Source: Epiperipatus broadwayi (lineage: Eukaryota > Animalia > Onychophora). From it: a DNA stretch of 64,000 nucleotides. A program made the translations under genes and the position numbers. The stretch covers positions 9,300,001 through 9,364,000 of the forward strand of contig JAQFVV010000005.1 in assembly GCA_028023455.1 (NCBI GenBank), given 5' to 3'. Below the pieces are notes generated by a model. The model made no database searches and was not told the DNA's origin. It saw nothing but the letters and a program-made list of their open reading frames with translations. Below are positions 2,360 to 53,459 of the stretch, piece by piece (the first letter of the stretch is position 1; each line of letters begins with the position of its first letter).

Positions 2360-2653
2360 AACTAGCTAAATTATACTAAACTGCTGTGTTAAAGTTCTAA
2401 AATTTTTCAATTTTGAAGAATTTGTAACCTGGCTGCATTTGCATGCTCAAAATACCATAGAAAAAACCTAGTGTACAATACTATATTTTGAATGAATTTT
2501 TTTGCAGATTGTTATATTTAGCTAGAACTAGCTAAATTTTACTGAACTGTCATGTTAAAGTTTTAAAATTCATCAATTTTGAAGAATTTGTAACCTGGCT
2601 GCATTTGCAAGCTTAAAAGCTTTTTGAAAATAGCTAGCATACAATACTATATT
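2360..2653. repeat. ~167-bp satellite, block 2 (~1.8 monomers)
   Basis: The same monomer resumes at AACTAGCTAAATTA 2360 and stops at ...ACAATACTATATT 2653. Confidence 0.95.
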
Positions 2654-4131
2654 ACACTCAAATACAAGCCTTTCACGCTAATTGTGCATATGCTTTGTGA
2701 GTGTCAATAATAAATGAATACTTTCTCACCAATACAAGATATAGTATTTATGCAGGAATAAAAGGAATCCTCTTATTCCTAAGACTCAAACGCTTATATA
2801 TGAGCAAATCTGAAGTACTGGCAAAGAAAGCATGATGATGGAACAGTCACTTTAAATTATTATATATAATATCTGAATGAATGATGTCGGTGAAATATTC
2901 TAGAATTTATTAAATGTCATTCCAACTGAAACTTAATAATATGTAAATAAGCATATATTTTATATAGCGTATGTAAACAATTGTATTAGTGTCAAATATC
3001 AGCCTTTCATGCTAATTGTGCATATGCTTTGTGAGTGTTAATAATAAATGAATACTTTCTCACCAATACAAGATATAGTATTTGTGCAGGAATAAAAGGA
3101 ATCCTCTTATTCCTACAACTCAAACGCTTATATATGAGCAAATCTGAAGTACTGGAAAAGAAAACATGATGATGGAACAGTCACTTTAAATTACTATATA
3201 TAATATCTGAATGAATGATGATGGTGAAACTTAATAATATGTAAATAAGCATTTATTTTATATAGGGTATGTAAACAATTGTATTAGTGTCAAATATCAG
3301 CCTTTCATTCTAATTGTGCATACGCTTTGCGAATGTTAATAAATGAATACTTTCTCACCAATACAAGATATAGTATTTATGCAGGAATAAAAGAAATCCT
3401 CTTATTCCTATGACTCAAATGCTTATATATGACCAAATCTGAAGTACTGGCAAAGAAAGCGTGATGATGTAACAGTCACTTTAAATTATTATATATAATA
3501 TCTGAATGAATGATGCCGATGAAATTGTCTAGAATATACTAAACATCATTCCAACTGAAACTTAATAATATGTAAATAAGCATTTATTTTATATAGCATA
3601 TGTAAACAATTGTATTAGTGTCAAATATCAGCCTTACATTCTAATTGTGCATACGCTTTGCGAATGTTAATAATAAATGAATACTTTCTCACCAATACAA
3701 GATATAGTATTTATGCAGGAATAAAAGAAATCCTCTTATTCCTATGACTCAAATGCTTATATATGACCAAATCTGAAGTACTGGCAACGAAAGCGTGATG
3801 ATGGAACAGTCACTTTAAATTATTATATATAATATCTGAATGAATGATGCCGATGAAATTGTCTAGAATATACTAAACATCATTCCAACTGAAACTTAAT
3901 AATATGTAAATAAGCATTTATTTTATATAGCATATGTAAACAATTGTATTACAGTCAAATATCAGCCTTTCACGCTAATTGTGCATACGCTTTGCGAGTG
4001 TTAATAATAAATGAATATTTTCTCACCAACACAAGATATAGTATTTATGTAGGAATAAAAGGAATCCTCTTATTCCTACAACTCAAACACTTATATATGC
4101 GCAAATCTGAAGTACTGGCAAAGAAAGTGTG
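2654..4131. repeat. Tandem array of a ~334-bp monomer (~4.5 copies) nested in the 167-bp satellite
   Basis: The anchor AGCCTT recurs at 2667, 3001, 3299, 3630 and 3964 (one copy has a ~35-bp deletion). ATATT is present at both junctions (2649-2653, 4132-4136), and the satellite resumes in register. Confidence 0.95.
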
Positions 4132-6173
4132 ATATTGTGAATGAATTTTTTTGCTGATGTTGTTATATTTAGCTTGAATTAGAGAAATTATACTGAACTG
4201 CCATATTAAAGTATTAAGATTCATCAATTTTGAGGAATTTGTAACCTGGCTGCATTTGCACGCTTAAAAGCCCATTGAAAATAGCTAGAATACAATACTA
4301 TATTGTGAATGAATTTTTTTGCCAATGTTGTTATATTTTGCTTGAACTAGCTAAATTGTACTGAACTGCCATGTTAAAGTATTAAGATTAATCAATTTTA
4401 AGAAATTTGTAACTGTGCTGCTTTTGCAAGCTTAAAATGCCATTGAAAAAAGCTAGTGTACAATACTATATTTTGAATAAATTTTTTGCTGATTTTGTTA
4501 TATTTAATTAGCACACGCCATATTATACTGAACTGCCATTTTAAAGTGTTAAGATTTATCAATTTGAGGAATTTGTAACCTGGCTCCATTTACAAGCTTA
4601 AAATACCATTGAAAAAAGCTATTGTATAATACTATATTTTGAATGAATTTTTTTTGTGATTTTTTTATATTTCACTAGAACTAGCTTAATTAAACCGAAC
4701 TGCCATGTTAAAGTTTTTAGATTAATCAATTCTGAGGAATTTGTAACCAGACTGCATTTTCAAGCTCAAAACTCCATTGAAAAAGCTAGTATACAATACT
4801 ATATTTTAAATGATTTTTTGTTTGATTTTGTTATATTTAGCAAGAACTAGCCAAATTATACTGAACTGCCATGTTAAAGTATTACAATTTATCAAGTTGG
4901 AAGATATTGTAACCTGACTGCTTTTGCAAGCTTAAAACTTCATTGACAGAAGCTAGTGTACAATACTATATTTTGAATAAATTTTTTTGTTGATTTTGTT
5001 ATATTTAGCTAGAACTAGCTAAATAATATTGAACTGCCATGTTAACATTTTAAGATCCATCAATTTTGAAGAATTTGTAACATCATTGCATTTGCAAGCT
5101 AAAAACCCATTGAAAGTAGCTTAAAACTTCATTGACAGAAGCTAGTGTACAATACTATATTTTGAATGAATTTTTTTGTTGATTTTGTTATATTTAGCTA
5201 GAACTAGCTAAATAATATTGAACTGCCATGTTAACATTTTAAGATCCATCAATTTTGAAGAATTTGTAACATCATTGCATTTGCAAGCTAAAAACCCATT
5301 GAAAGTAGCTACGGTACAATACTTTATTGTGAATGAATTTTTTTTTGCTGATTTTGTTATATTTAGCTAGAATTAGTAACCTGGCTGCATTTGCAACCTT
5401 AAAACCCAATTTAAAAAGCTAGTGTACAATACTATATTTTGAATAAATTTTTTTGATGATTCTGTTATATTTAGCTAGAACTAGCCAAATTATACTAAAC
5501 TGTCATGTTAAAGTAATAATAATCATCAAATTTGAGGAATTGTAACATGACTGCATTTGCAGCTTACAACCCCATTGAAATAAGCTAGTGTACAATACTA
5601 TATTTTGTATAATTTTTTTGCTGACTTTGTTATACTTAGTTAGAACTAGCTAAATTATACTGAACTGCCATGTTAAAGTATTAAGATTCGTCAATTTTGA
5701 GGAATTTGTAACCCAGCTGCACTTGCAAGCTTAAAAGCCCATTGAAAAAAGCTAGTGTACAATACTTTATTGTGAATATTTTTTTTTTGCTGATTTTGCT
5801 ATATTTAGCTAGAACTAGCTACATTTTACTGAACTGCCATTTTAATTGTGAATGAATTTTTTTGCTGATTTTGTTATATTTAGCTGGCAACAGCTAAATT
5901 ATACTGAACTGGTTTGTTAAAGTATTAAGGTTCATCAATTTTGAGGAATTTGTAACCTGGCTGAATTTGAAAGCTGAAAAGCCCATTATAAGAATGCTTG
6001 TGTACAATACTATATTGTGAATGAATTTTTCTGCTGATTTTGTTATCTTTAGTTAGAATTAGCTAAATTATACTGAACTGCCATGTTAAAGTATTAAGAT
6101 TCATCAATTTTGAGGAATTTATAACCTCACTGCATTTACAAGCTTAAAAGCCCATTAGAAGAATGCCAGTGTA
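4132..6173. repeat. ~167-bp satellite, block 3 (~12 monomers, more diverged variant)
   Basis: Same monomer with diagnostic AAGCTTAAAAGCCCATTGAAA and GTATTAAGATTCATC variants, plus several internal deletions and a 189-bp duplication. Confidence 0.95.
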
Positions 6174-9523: not shown

Positions 9524-10780
9524 GGCTACCTGATGCCAAAAAAGATCAAGAAACAGCCGTAACCAGCTAAAGATGTCCTAAGACCAAAAGATAACCAGCC
9601 AGCAGAGAAGAGAAAATAATGGTAATCATTCCTTCAAATTTAAATCTTCAGCTAAACTCAAATCTAAAATGCTAGCTAATTCTAAAGTAATGGCCATAAT
9701 AATTATAATAATAATGTAAACAAGCATCTATTTTTATAGCGCGATGTTTATAATTGTAATTCACTAAATATCAGCCTTTTACAGCTACTGTACATGCGCT
9801 TTAATGAGTGTTAAATAATAAATGAATACTTTTCAGTGCCCATACAAGATATAGCATTTAAGAAAGAATAAAATGAATCCACTTATTCTTTCCGAACCCA
9901 AATGTTTATATATGGGCAAATCTTAAGTACTGGCAAATAAAGCGTGAAGATAGATCATTCACTTTAAATTACGGTTCGCGTTGTCTGACTTAATGACATC
10001 GACAAAATTACTTAGAATTTACTTAAACGTCACTTTCAAATGAAACTCAAACATATGTAAACAAGCATCTATTTTTATAGCGCGATGTTTATAATTGTAA
10101 TTCACTAAATATCAGCCTTTTACAGCTACTGTACATGCGCTTTAATGAGTGTTAAATAATAAATGAATACTTTTCAGTGCCCATACAAGATATAGCATTT
10201 AAGAAAGAATAAAATGAATCCACTTATTCTTTCTGAACCCAAATGTTTATATATGGGCAAATCTTAAGTACTGGCAAATAAAGCGTGAAGATAGATCATT
10301 CACTTTAAATTATGGTTCGCGTTGTCTGACTTAATGACATCGATGAAATTACTTAGAATTTACTTAAACGTCACTTTCAAACAAAACTCAAACATATGTA
10401 AACAAGCATCTATTTTTATAGCGCGATGTTTATAATTGTAATTCACTAAATATCAGCCTTTTACAGCTACTGTACATGCGCTTTAATGAGTGTTAAATAA
10501 TAAATGAATACTTTTCAGTGCCCATACAAGATATAGCATTTAAGAAAGAATAAAATGCATCCACTTATTCTTTCCGAACCCAAATGTTTATATATGGGCA
10601 AATCTTAAGTAGTGACATTTAAGTAAATTCTAAGTAATTTCGTCGATGTCATTAAGTCAGACAATGCGAACCGTAATTTAAAGTGAATGATCTATCTTCA
10701 TGCTTTATTTGCCAGTACTTAAGATTTTCCCATATATAAACATTTGGGTTCAGGAAGAATAAGTGGATTCATTTTATTCT

Positions 10781-11229
10781 ATGGGGAAACTAAGGCCACT
10801 GTTCACAACAGAGCTGCTCAACACATGTATACCTATAGAAGAGCAAAAAAGAACAGTGATAACTTTTCAATATTTCTGGAACATGAAAAGCAGACTCGCC
10901 ATGTGTTCGAACCAGGCAACCCCAGGATTGTTTGCCCTGAAACCAACGACTGTAAAAGAAAGATCAAAGAGGCGTACTTTATTGTTTGCGACAACAATTC
11001 TATCAATAGACGCGACACATGTTTTTCCATTTCAAAAAAATGGTCAAACTGATTTGCATTTACATTTGCATATTTGTTATTTAATAACACTACGTAAAGA
11101 TTTATTACTTTCGTCGGCCATGAATATGAGGGCAAACCTCAAAAGCGCTTGGCCCATTTAATAGTTTTAAGCGAAATTTGTTTTGTTTATTTGGAAGCTT
11201 CTTCGTCAGCGAGTAAATCGTTTTTAGGC
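10781..11229 (+). mobile_element. Penelope-like element 3' fragment (GIY-YIG endonuclease C-terminus plus pseudo-LTR)
   Basis: YGETKATVHNRAAQH...FLEHEKQTRHVFEPGNPRIVCPETNDCKRKIKEAYFI...NSINRRD...ISKKW matches the PLE GIY-YIG C-terminal pattern and is followed by a hammerhead relic. It interrupts the inverted 341-bp copy, which resumes in register. Confidence 0.85.
11114..11156 (+). ncRNA. Degenerate minimal type I hammerhead in the Penelope pLTR (likely inactive)
   Basis: TCGGCC-ATGAATA-T-GAGG gcaaa CCTC-AAAA-GCGC-TT-GGCCCA. The helices are intact, including palindromic AGCGCT helix III. Three core positions deviate from CUGANGA/GAAA. Confidence 0.6.
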
Positions 11230-12792
11230 TCTTTCTTAAATGCTATATCTTGTATGGGCACTGAAAAGTATTCATTTATTATTTAACACTCATTAAAGTG
11301 CATGTACAGTAGCTGTAAAATGCTGATATTTAGTGAATAATAATGTAACTAAACTTGTTCTAAATGTAATTTTATTTTCTTGGTTTAATTCAAAATCTTG
11401 CCTAAATTTATTTCCCGAATAGTTCCAAATTTAATTTGTTTTCCTACCTACTTTTCTGAATGGCATATTAATTTGATAAAAACATTTAATTTATTAAGTC
11501 AAATATCTTATGTTTTGGTTTACTTATGTATGATTGATTTGGTTTTGTGTATTTAATTTAATTGTTTAAAATCATTTTTAAAATCATTTATATTCAATGT
11601 TCAATAACTTTTGTTAAGTAATCTATTTTAGAGTAATAATCAAAATTCTCAGTTGTTATGTAAATATTTTAAGTTAATGATAATAATTGCTTTCACTAAT
11701 TATAAACAACTTCTAACTTTTAAACTAAATCAATCAAATACCAAATAGCATTACATAAACTTTTTTTAAAATATGCTAAAGTTAAATTTCAGATTTCACT
11801 TGCGTGAAATCTTACATTATTTATATATTGCATTTTCTAAATCTATGTGAAATATTATTAAATTTTACTTATTTTATTGTTTATGCTATATGTATTCAAA
11901 ACTGCACTTCATTCGTAATTAAATGATTAGTGAAAAATAAATCTAGATTCTCACCTATATATGTGTAATATTGCGTAGATTAACGCACAAACTAAAAACG
12001 CCATTTTGAAATGAATAAAATCTTTTGATTGAGATATTATTACAAACTTATCAGATAGATTTGCTTTTAAATATGATATTTAAATGATATCTAGTTGAGA
12101 TGATAAAATGCAGCATAAATCTATAAATTTATATAGTAATTTCCTTTACTATGCTGTAGTCCTTGTTAAATAAATAAAAGCCTATATAGATAGCCTTATA
12201 ACTAAGATTCATAAATTTTCTTTAATAATATAATTAAAAATATTAGCATATGAACTGATCCTGAGTAGTTTCATGAAGGAGACTAGATTTTGCATCTTAA
12301 ATTTTGTTATATGATTATGTTGTGAGTGGTGCGTATATGTCTTTTCAAAACACTATGGAGTAACTCACTTATTGCTGCATTTCTTTACTCAGCATATGTG
12401 TTAGGGCTACACCAGTACAAATAGTTTGGACAATTATCTTTCTCAGATGGTGATTGGTACATGCCAACCCATACTGCATCCTTAATAATGGAGCATGAGA
12501 CTCACACAGAGCATAAGACTCCCACTTAAAATAAATTGCTCGATCATCCGGACTAAAATGCCTCCTCTATCACAGCAATGAGTTCAGTGGAAGGGAACCA
12601 TTACTTAGTAAACATCCCATGAAAAAGGTACATATATGAGACACAGGGACCCAGAGTTATATGTTTTTATATATGGAAAGGTATCTGAATTTTGGCTGCC
12701 CATAATCAGTTCATCCTGCCCTTTTTATTATTATTTCAGCATTGATCTGAAATCGAATCCAGATTGATAGGCAAATTATCTATATAGAGAGT

Positions 12793-19047: not shown

Positions 19048-19865
19048 AGTTTAAGGATATGAAACATCACATGATCACCATTTCTTATGCTTGCTTATAA
19101 CTTATTAAAACAGGCAAAACTCTCCATACAGTATTGCCACTCAGGGCAAGCCAGAGTAATCAATGGATGCCAAAAGGCTTGTGCATAAAATGTCCACTTA
19201 GTGTCTACTCATCCGATATCCCCAGACTAGTATCTGGCTTGTGACTTTCGCCAATGAGTTGTCTTGGATCTGAGAGGACTGCACCTAGATCTTAATATCT
19301 AATGCAGTTGGATGAGTAGGCACTAGATGGGGATTTTGTGCACAAGCCTTCTGGCATCCATTGATTACTCTGGCTGGCACTTAGTGGCAATACTGTTGAA
19401 GAGTTTTGACTGTTTTAATAACAGTTATAAGGAGCATAAGAAATGGTAACCATGTGATGTTTATTGGACTTAAAACCAAACCAATCCTGCCTAAAGAATA
19501 GTGGTGGCTATGGTTATTAAAGAACCAAAGATACCAAAATGTATGGGTACTGAACTGAATTCAGACCTATATACTATATAAGCTAATGAATTTTGATTGA
19601 AAATACTGTGTTTTCAATTTGGGACTCATAGTTTTCTAGTTAAGTAGAGATAAAAGGTGACTGCTGGAGGGTTGTATTAGATCTTAAGATCTAGGTGCAG
19701 TGCTCTCAGATCCAAGGCTCAAGCCAAAAATTAGTCTGGGGATATTGGATGAGTAGGCACTACATGGGGATTTTATGCACAAGCCTTCTGGCATCCAATG
19801 ATTACTCTGGCTTGCACTGGGTGGCAATACTGTATAAAGAGTTTTGCCTGTTTTTATTCTATAAA
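19048..19865. mobile_element. ~440-nt monomer family, locus A: inverted copy followed by partial plus full tandem copies; carries a hammerhead relic
   Basis: 19048-19306 is the reverse complement of the monomer and 19307-19865 is direct. TGATTACTCTGG recurs at ~19361 and ~19798. Homologous to 39005-39720 and 59262-59620. Confidence 0.85.
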
Positions 19866-52109: not shown

Positions 52110-53459
52110 TCAAGATAATTGTATGAGAATCTCCAGAGTGTCATGAGCAATGAAATGGGTTGCTATATGATTTTCCAGAATATATTTCTCTGTATCTTTA
52201 TAATCACACAAATAACACTTAAATACATCAGGATTGTTATTACTGTGTTCTCTTGCTGATTGTCTTTCTGCATTAATATCTAATATCTGACTAAAATTTT
52301 CTTGCTTTAAAAATGTACTTTGAGAAGTCACTTTGTAATCATATAGGTTGTGCTGGAAATATTTTTTATCTATATGCAGTCTCTCGTGTGATTTTAAACT
52401 ATCTTTCCTAGCAGATTTGTGATCACAAAAACTACAGGGGAAAGGTTTTTCTCCAGTATGAATTCTTTTATGAAGTGTTAATCTATTTTTTAGATTAGTT
52501 TTGTAACCACAAAAGTGGCACTCGATAGGTTTTTCTCCTGTATGAGTTTTTTCATGGATTTTTAAACTGTCTTTCCTAGAAGACTTAAAATTACATAAGT
52601 TGCAATGGAAAGGTTTTTCTCCAGTATGAGTTCTCTTATGAGCTATTAAAGATTGTTCATGAGCTGTCTTATAATCACAGAAAGTACATGAAAAAGGTTT
52701 TTCGCCTGTATGAGTTCTTTCGTGAGTTATTAAATAATGTTTATGGGCAGTTTTGTAATCGCATAAAGGGCATGGAAATGGTTTTTCTCCAGTATGAGTT
52801 CTTTTATGCGCGATTAAAGTACTACTTTGAGAAGTTTTGTAATTGCAGAAGTCGCACGAAAAAGGTTTTTCACCAGTATGAATTTTTTCATGAATTATTA
52901 AATTTTTTTTTTGAGTAGTCTTAAAAGAACACAAGCTGCATTCAAAAAGATTTTCTCCTGTATGAATTTTTTCATGTGTTTTTAAAGTATATTTTCTAGC
53001 AACTTTTAAGTTACAAAAACTACATAGATATGGTTTTTCCCCAGTATGCATCCTTTTATGAATTATTAAATTACTATTATGAGTTGTTTTGAACGTGCAA
53101 AAATTACATTGAAAGGGTTTTTCTCCTGTATGACTTCTTTCATGAACAATTAAACTATTTCTGTGAGGACTCTTATAATCACATAAGTTACATTTCAAAA
53201 GATCTCCTGTGTGAATTCTTTCATGTATTTTTAAAGCATCTTTTCTAGCAACTTTAAAATTACAATAGCTACAAAGATATGGTTTCTCTCCAGTATGAGT
53301 TCTTGTATGAATTCTTAAATTACTATTGTGAGTAGTCTTGAAAGTGCAAAAGTTGCATTGAAAAGGTTTTTCTCCCATATGAGTTCGTTCATGAACTATT
53401 AGACTACTTTTATGAACAGTTCTGTAACCACAAAATCCACAATAAAAAGTTTTTTCCAT
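52110..53459 (-). CDS. C2H2 (Kruppel-type) multi-zinc-finger protein, 449 aa
   Basis: Uninterrupted ORF with 13 tandem C-x2-C-x12-H-x3-H fingers joined by HTGEKP-type linkers, one degenerate finger, and one isolated C-terminal finger. There is an in-frame stop 9 codons upstream of the ATG. No effector domain is visible. Confidence 0.92.
   Translation of the reverse strand: MEKTFYCGFCGYRTVHKSSLIVHERTHMGEKPFQCNFCTFKTTHNSNLRIHTRTHTGEKPYLCSYCNFKVARKDALKIHERIHTGDLLKCNLCDYKSPHRNSLIVHERSHTGEKPFQCNFCTFKTTHNSNLIIHKRMHTGEKPYLCSFCNLKVARKYTLKTHEKIHTGENLFECSLCSFKTTQKKNLIIHEKIHTGEKPFSCDFCNYKTSQSSTLIAHKRTHTGEKPFPCPLCDYKTAHKHYLITHERTHTGEKPFSCTFCDYKTAHEQSLIAHKRTHTGEKPFHCNLCNFKSSRKDSLKIHEKTHTGEKPIECHFCGYKTNLKNRLTLHKRIHTGEKPFPCSFCDHKSARKDSLKSHERLHIDKKYFQHNLYDYKVTSQSTFLKQENFSQILDINAERQSAREHSNNNPDVFKCYLCDYKDTEKYILENHIATHFIAHDTLEILIQLS

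Follow-up and report, generated by a model that had tools for sequence, protein, structure and literature searches.

Hammerhead-less tandem retroelements with a covarying RNA fold and the insertion footprint of Penelope-like elements in the onychophoran Epiperipatus broadwayi

Two short tandem arrays, with units of 334 and 341 nt that are 75% identical to each other, are found in a stretch of 64,000 nucleotides from the onychophoran Epiperipatus broadwayi (assembly GCA_028023455.1, contig JAQFVV010000005.1, positions 9,300,001 to 9,364,000; in the following called the window). The original prediction for this locus described at least four hairpins with compensatory substitutions in both units and proposed an element that is retrozyme-like or dependent on Penelope-like elements (PLEs), with a possibly self-cleaving RNA. 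The question raised by this locus is what kind of element the arrays represent and what their fold is kept for. With a probability of roughly two in three we consider them as separate insertions of one superfamily of non-coding, non-autonomous and hammerhead-less retroelements of ~332-344 nt, which are mobilised by the reverse transcriptase (RT) and endonuclease of PLEs and whose fold serves as a module for RT recruitment and initiation. Relatives of both units were gathered from the window's own genome, an AT-rich and CpG-depleted assembly of 5.6 Gb.

Each locus is one insertion event of head-to-tail monomers. In ~25 loci of the 334-nt family (family A) mostly a run of plus-oriented monomers is followed by a head-to-head minus run, the two arms being asymmetric and joined at a position that differs from locus to locus. 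The outer ends fall into two narrow windows ~45 nt apart, at monomer positions 5-20 and 41-73, and 14 of 17 interpretable inverted composites combine one “long” end (5-20) with one “short” end (41-73). Target-site duplications (TSDs) of 8-13 bp flank the family A insertions, and single-arm copies exist, the 334-nt array of the window among them. The same layout recurs in the families B, C, D and H (described below) and the clustering of termini likewise in B and C. PLE insertions are known for 5′ truncation, partial tandems, an adjacent inverted 5′-truncated copy and a tail of 30-40 bp at one end only (PMC8557442). All these features are found here, namely 5′ truncation with partial or multiple tandems, an inverted truncated arm with variable junction, a tail at one end and variable TSDs, and this footprint supports the supposed retrozyme-like or PLE-dependent nature of the element. 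The monomers themselves are of the retrozyme type, i.e., short, AT-rich, non-coding units (334, 341, 337, 339, 344 and ~332 nt) dispersed over thousands of candidate loci. A possible active partner is present in the form of a young autonomous PLE with endonuclease (EN+; L034:174-1775, with RVT_1 plus an end resembling GIY-YIG at the C-terminus), whose copies are 97-98% alike. Thousands of candidates of this young EN+ PLE were observed, some of them as head-to-head inverted pairs (L040, L051).

Tandem Repeats Finder places the 334-nt array of the window at 3225-4133, preceded from 2927 by a variant of 295 nt, and the 341-nt array at 9714-10611. BLAST with a single monomer extends the first array to 2650-4133 (~4.4 units, all in plus orientation) and the second to 9706-10617 (plus), which is followed by an inverted partial unit (10619-10779 and 11237-11331). 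The insertions and their parts are:

2650..4133, minus strand: single-arm insertion of family A (334 nt) with 4.4 head-to-tail monomers, hosted by the 168-nt satellite; its units are 2650-2929 (monomer positions 55-334), 2930-3229 (shortened by a deletion of 34 nt), 3228-3558, 3559-3892 and 3893-4133 (monomer positions 1-241)

9720..10617, minus strand: left arm of the family B (341-nt) insertion, 2.7 head-to-tail monomers, beginning at the “long” cDNA start (monomer position ~12-18); hairpins at 9862-9892, 9897-9916, 9944-9962 and 9992-10035, repeated one period on

10619..11335, plus strand: right arm of the family B insertion, inverted and 5′-truncated (10619-10779 and 11237-11335)

9707..9719 and 11336-11348: TSD AATAATAATGTAA of 13 nt flanking the family B insertion

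10780..11236, plus strand: not part of the element; 5′-truncated copy of a young PLE (end of the C-terminal GIY-YIG reading frame and ~180 nt)

The left end of the 334-nt array is the fixed “short” cDNA start and its right end a 5′ truncation, with the minus strand as template RNA. Both flanks belong to one and the same unit of the 168-nt satellite. This satellite of 166-168 nt occupies 473-2650 and 4132-6173 with higher-order periods of 334 and 395 nt, and the 334-nt insertion lies inside one of its units. In the family B insertion the outer end of the right arm is the “short” start site, and a few bases of the TSD can be assigned equally well to the element end. The right arm is broken by a later insertion. 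The interrupting stretch 10780-11236 is the 3′ end of a PLE that matches thousands of loci at 97-98% identity; its GIY-YIG fragment was considered as a part of the monomer and rejected, being a 5′-truncated copy of an abundant young PLE that was inserted later and has nothing to do with the element.

The superfamily comprises numerous families. Family A is represented by at least 2,600 candidate loci with copies ~5% off the consensus. Family B (341 nt) is young, with 97-99% identity, and the same range of identity is found in family C (337 nt), whose arrays reach up to 13+7 units. Families D and D2 have units of 339 and 344 nt, family F of ~339 nt, and families G and H of ~332 nt with 3,700 candidates or more; E, J, K and M are partial. 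The additional families were found in the flanks and by a search for the pattern of gap lengths. Family-level sequences are 67-86% identical to each other, and in young arrays the monomers are identical within the array. A putative sub-family at locus L030 turned out to be an old decayed 334-nt copy and not a separate subfamily. The most variable block of the monomer, with more than ten distinct versions, lies between TAATAAATGAATAC and GATATAG (window 3684-3699 and 10181-10198). One insertion of the 337-nt family (L032:120-1045, with an 11-bp TSD, ACCTCTACTTT) shows a 10-nt deletion in hairpin 3 of one arm only; either each arm derives from a template molecule of its own or the deletion occurred later.

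In the minus-strand RNA at least five predicted helices (H5, H1, H2, H3 and H4) are kept by compensatory substitutions in 6-8 subfamilies. The four hairpins of the original prediction were all found at their places in both arrays and correspond to H1 to H4; for one complete monomer of the 334-nt array the helices are:

3717..3743, minus strand: hairpin H1 (AGGAATAA ... TTATTCCT), 8-10 bp, 5-6 positions compensated across families

3748..3767, minus strand: hairpin H2 (CTCA ... TGAG), 5 bp and 2 inner pairs on the minus-strand RNA

3795..3813, minus strand: hairpin H3 (GTGA[C/T] ... GTCAC), outer 4 bp invariant (GTGA/TCAC)

3842..3885, minus strand: hairpin H4 (GAATGA[C/T]G ... C[G/A]TCATTC, AAATT/AATTT forming an inner stem), conserved

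3595-3604 and 3648-3657, minus strand: arms of helix H5 in the monomer 3559-3892 (AGCGTATGTA / TGCATACGCT on the plus strand)

H1 reads GGAATAA/TTATTCC at 2755-2779 in the 334-nt family and AAAGAATAA/TTATTCTTT at 9863-9891 in the 341-nt family. Its arms are AGGAATAA/TTATTCCT in A and D, GAAAGAATAA/TTATTCTTTC in B and F, TAAGAGTAA/TTACTCTTA in C, GAAAGAATGG/CCATTCTTTC in G and GAAAGGATGG/CCATCCTTTC in H, with 5-6 positions changed on both arms and none unpaired at the family level. In an alignment of 19 sequences (A1) the pairs 176-206 to 186-197 of this helix alternate between AU and GC and no family is broken. H2 is CTCA-12-TGAG at 2785-2804 in the 334-nt unit versus CCCA-12-TGGG at 9897-9916 in the 341-nt unit; the switch to CCCA/TGGG is present in B, F, G and H, and in H the inner pair U-A has become C-G. 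Pair 151-170 of A1 is divided between CG (10) and UA (7) and pair 156-165 between UA (13) and CG (4). The variable block mentioned above holds an H2-arm tetramer (CTCA or CCCA) in the families A, B and F, not so in C, D and H, and this sequence suggests an alternative pairing partner for H2.

H3 reads GTGA/TCAC at 3461-3479 in the 334-nt family versus GTGAA/TTCAC at 9944-9962 in the 341-nt family. Its fifth pair is C-G in A and C, A-U in B and G-C in D and F (pair 102-114 of A1: GC 9, CG 2, AU 2), and in C and D the stem reaches 7 bp with unrelated sequences. H4 is formed in the 334-nt family by GAATGATG/CATCATTC at 3508-3551. In both hairpins CpG decay has to be considered: among 54 copies of family A the T column of the H3 “T.G” pair holds T in 28 and C in 26, and the T column of GAATGATG in H4 holds T in 27 and C in 27, each followed by G. 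Such columns with about equal C and T before G mean that the master copies had perfect C-G pairs, i.e., GTGAC/GTCAC in H3 and GAATGACG/CGTCATTC in H4. For hairpin 3 the proposed covariation is upheld and extended by the fifth pair, CpG decay accounting in part for the apparent compensation at the T.G (U.G) pair. Hairpin 4 is present and conserved, with wobble pairs and without true double compensation; the compensation that appears in the window copy is CpG decay on both arms. Pair 11-56 of A1, which belongs to H4, is GU in 9 and AU in 8 sequences on the minus-strand RNA, and the plus strand would give an A.C mismatch.

H5 is a long-range helix spanning ~55 nt that occurs in every family, in the 341-nt array at 10079-10088 with 10133-10141. 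Its arm sequences vary and yet stay complementary (in A, E, B/F/H, C and D), as in AGCG-TATG/CATA-CGCT, AGCGC-ATGT/ACAT(N)GCGCT, CGTCT(T)GCG/CGCAGACG and GACGC-ATGCA/TGCAT(A)GCGTC, with duplex energies of -8 to -15 kcal/mol. Its loop contains the “short” cDNA start site (monomer position ~55) next to the 3′ arm, and the “long” start lies ~25 nt further 3′. The weak fifth stem that had also been pointed out does exist, as a part of the loop of this much better helix. A further long-range helix, CAUUUAUU/AAUAAAUG, is unproven: it pairs in A, C and D, in B with G.U, and fails in H.

With four families only, a scan for helices kept in all of them with double changes was marginal (P ~0.07). The six-family test used CpG-corrected sequences and permuted substitution patterns among columns sharing the family A base. 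It gave 8 compensated pairs on the plus and 9 on the minus strand, where chance would yield 2.0 and 2.5, respectively (P=0.01 and 0.003), and the best helix with 4 compensated pairs was reached in 0 of 300 permutations. In the larger alignment A1, RNAalifold recovered H4, H3, H2 and H1, and of the 38 pairs 10 are compensated. Of the cells of this alignment 95.2% are paired, compared with 90.6 ± 0.5% after shuffling within columns and 39-47% after sliding the partners by 1-3 columns, which leaves 1-6 compensated pairs instead of 10. For H5 the cognate pairing of arms ranks second among 720 permutations. Column permutation, shuffling, slid partners and the comparison of cognate with non-cognate arms thus all place the covariation above chance, and the compensatory changes first noticed between two units persist in 6-8 subfamilies (334, 341, 337, 339, 344 and ~332 nt).

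Which strand is folded can be deduced in the first instance from the insertions. Since cDNA extends inward from the outer ends in monomer plus sense, the RNA that serves as template has to be reverse-complementary to the plus strand of the window, and in this respect the original prediction, which analysed the other strand, has to be corrected. On the minus-strand reading 95.2% of the cells in the A1 pair set are paired versus 84.6% on the plus strand, and several pairs are fixed by G.U, among them 149-172 (18 of 19 sequences), 186-197 (19 of 19) and 11-56 (9 of 19). Minimum free energy z-scores against dinucleotide shuffles range from -2.5 to -8.2 for the minus and from -1.5 to -2.6 for the plus strand in six of six families; the 341-nt unit of the window itself has -2.98 and -1.51, respectively. 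The geometry of the insertions, the G·U pairs and the z-scores of folding agree on an RNA of the window's minus strand, and the supposed selection on a single-stranded fold is supported by covariation, G.U pairs and the asymmetry of z-scores.

The same observations bear on an unlikely alternative, according to which the selected hairpins act in DNA, either as fold-backs of the first-strand cDNA (in second-strand priming or strand switching) or as cruciforms or protein sites in the integrated copy. Watson-Crick compensation is strand-neutral, H3 and H1 pair on both strands, and PLE integration uses both strands with frequent inversions (PMC11167929), all of which would suit hairpins in DNA. However, where pairs are fixed by G.U on the minus strand, the complementary cDNA would have A.C mismatches, and in six of six families the difference in z-scores speaks for the strand of the template RNA.

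We return to the retroelement whose RNA would be recognised by a PLE reverse transcriptase. In the case of the Anolis PLE, both strands of the DNA are cut and extended by the protein, and reverse transcription begins inside an RNA stem-loop at two neighbouring internal sites, with the tail between them; transcripts of PLE tandem loci are multimeric and are used as template, and hammerhead cleavage is not needed in vitro (PMC11167929). By inference from such published PLE biochemistry, both cut DNA strands would prime cDNA here on multimeric or repeatedly re-used RNA. Synthesis would start at two internal RNA sites, the stretch between them corresponding to the PLE “tail”. With the short start in the loop of H5 and the long start ~25 nt 3′ of this helix, the fold can be seen as a cis-acting module for recruitment and initiation; by analogy the PLE reverse transcriptase probably recognises this fold and initiates on it. 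It may recruit this telomerase-related enzyme in cis and position initiation, replacing whatever role the hammerhead region has in ordinary retrozymes, so that the cycle would need no ribozyme.

Less probable again than hairpins acting in DNA, and quite improbable on the whole, is a fold that holds a new self-cleaving (and ligating) ribozyme in place of the hammerhead, by which RNAs of ~335 nt would be cut, circularised and reverse-transcribed in rolling-circle mode, as has been proposed for retrozymes. The family would then be a “retrozyme” whose catalytic RNA is new. In monomer size and in the architecture of insertions it resembles this genome's hammerhead retrozymes, the fold combines several helices with unpaired blocks that are conserved, and the identical monomers of young arrays are what rolling-circle copying would yield. 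Moreover, in B, F and H the order CUUAAGA - H2 - GAAA - H1 on the minus-strand RNA recalls the hammerhead outline. This outline lacks the essential G5, has two mismatches and no GAAA in A and D, and is thus not conserved; matches to a hammerhead with one mismatch obtained by regular expression are not conserved between families either. A reading of the GTGATGA...CTGA motifs as a box C/D small nucleolar RNA was also rejected, the boxes not being conserved in the 341-nt family. As originally noted, a canonical hammerhead is missing: a regular-expression search for the CUGANGA core found none on either strand of six of six family-level sequences. The search for CUGANGA...GAAA did find the hammerhead (...CCTCA CTGATGA ... 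GAAAC TAGTC TGGGG...) of L101 (G000:C5:19281500-19285500), which, like window 19048-19865, belongs to a co-resident retrozyme family of 430-450 nt with a minimal type I hammerhead. Rfam yielded no ribozyme at the gathering threshold or at E<=10 for the arrays of the window and at E<=5 for ten loci of seven families, the sub-threshold matches being only to “miRNA” models at the junctions of inverted arms. Since the minimal hammerhead of L101 goes unreported by Rfam cmscan at E<=1, this blank search is weak evidence and must not be read as absence, and the practical lesson is that Rfam searches overlook the minimal hammerheads of this genome's retrozymes. PLE insertion in vitro takes unprocessed multimeric RNA and proceeds without cleavage (PMC11167929), and non-autonomous hammerhead-less PLE relatives also make multicopy head-to-tail insertions (PMC8557442). 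The proposal of a self-cleaving RNA thus finds no support here.

One could also suspect an ordinary satellite, a DNA transposon of the fold-back type or a repeat of the Helentron type, with short inverted repeats that covary by chance, from the AT-rich sequence in which short stems are common, from the marginal four-family statistic and from head-to-head arms superficially like those of fold-back elements, but this is largely refuted by thousands of dispersed short arrays of 1-20 units with TSDs and fixed two-site termini, by arms unequal in length and register with variable centres and ends ~45 nt apart, by single-arm copies, by significant six-family statistics and by H1 with 5-6 compensated positions and zero uncompensated family-level changes. 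The original prediction was right to set the arrays apart from ordinary satellites, and its own caveat of a DNA-transposon or Helentron origin is improbable. No open reading frame was detected in the flanks examined, a genome-wide search for a transposase-bearing master copy not having been made, and a search for a PLE reading frame between neighbouring monomer copies at L009 gave no reading frame of at least 80 amino acids.

Possible traces of expression were also observed. Many monomer variants and contigs with tandem or circular junctions occur in three sequencing runs from two organisms. In one run of another organism (X2) the contig depth peaks at 3,000-5,000-fold over window 9808-9891, a conserved block of the monomer, and a loose end just before window 9890 is what we take to be the Illumina small-RNA 5′ adapter. 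Depth peak and adapter-like end together suggest small-RNA libraries and hence transcription, being neither proof nor an indication of processing sites. The underlying study (P1) is probably small-RNA sequencing, and the family may feed small RNAs.

Several points weigh against the PLE-dependent element with an RT-recruiting fold that we favour. The recruiting role of the fold is argued from analogy only. An autonomous PLE sharing sequence with the monomer was not found, and a comparison with the terminal 647 nt of one young PLE showed no similarity to it. The family sequences share descent, so that the shuffle controls overstate significance and the values given above are not strict probabilities. 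RNAalifold returned no consensus for the alignment of the 5′ domain (A2, dom2), because bulges and decayed copies misregister the arms, and H5 is thus based on arm-by-arm analysis. The pair set used for the comparison of strands was predicted on the minus strand, which biases this measure and leaves the z-scores unaffected. Finally, the expression data are contigs of uncertain type that carry presence and tandem junctions, no ends or strands.

Two further repeats lie elsewhere in the window. A near-perfect hairpin of 190 nt at 20350-20541 matches a plant miRNA-precursor model with E=3e-12, under the gathering score, and most likely represents the point where the arms of another inverted repeat element meet, not a miRNA. 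At 52394-53435 a repeat with a period of 84 nt comprises 12 units that are 66-79% alike; its period suggests a putative tandem array coding for C2H2 zinc fingers.

In stringent LINE/SINE partnerships the LINE reverse transcriptase recognises a 3′ stem-loop. The elements described here are proposed to be comparable in so far as they would stay mobile by conserving an RNA structure that the RT of a partner recognises in cis or trans; they differ by a telomerase-related PLE RT with GIY-YIG nuclease, by the lack of poly(A) or 3′ tail sharing and by multimeric inverted insertions. A second comparison is with the metazoan non-LTR retrozymes (Cervera & de la Pena 2020, PMC7229834; Li et al. 2026, preprint 10.64898/2026.07.22.740005), which likewise have AT-rich non-coding monomers of 150-450 nt in short dispersed tandem arrays, many subfamilies, TSDs >4 bp and co-occurring PLEs, and the hammerhead retrozymes of this genome leave the same inverted and tandem footprint. 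In contrast with them, the present superfamily lacks the type I hammerhead of each monomer and conserves other covarying helices. Hammerheads are also missing in the non-autonomous Chlamys elements of green algae, MRC1 among them, and in the Naiad PLEs of invertebrates (Craig et al. 2021, PMC8557442). Chlamys non-autonomous elements are recognised via 3′-end similarity to an autonomous family, and none was found for the 334/341-nt superfamily, which moreover has an animal host, much shorter units and a covariation-supported RNA fold not described for Chlamys elements. With the Anolis Poseidon PLE PAc (Frangieh et al. 2024, PMC11167929) it shares two adjacent internal RT starts, a tail of ~30-45 nt, a start in a stem-loop, the use of both target strands and the dispensability of hammerhead cleavage. 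PAc is, however, autonomous and has its start sites in the 5′ part of the reading frame beside the hammerhead, whereas here a non-coding unit of 0.33 kb without sequence similarity to the PLE examined is concerned; H5 and the start-site stem-loop of PAc are compared by position only.

Thus the genome of E. broadwayi harbours an abundant family with recently active subfamilies (some copies 97-99% alike) that bears the full PLE footprint and no hammerhead, and this mode of life in vivo therefore appears to be possible without that ribozyme. The hammerhead is the defining feature of animal retrozymes, and the family described here bears on its role in Penelope-like retrotransposition. If the role deduced for its fold is true, it would represent a compact natural candidate for the RNA element recognised by the telomerase-related reverse transcriptase of PLEs.

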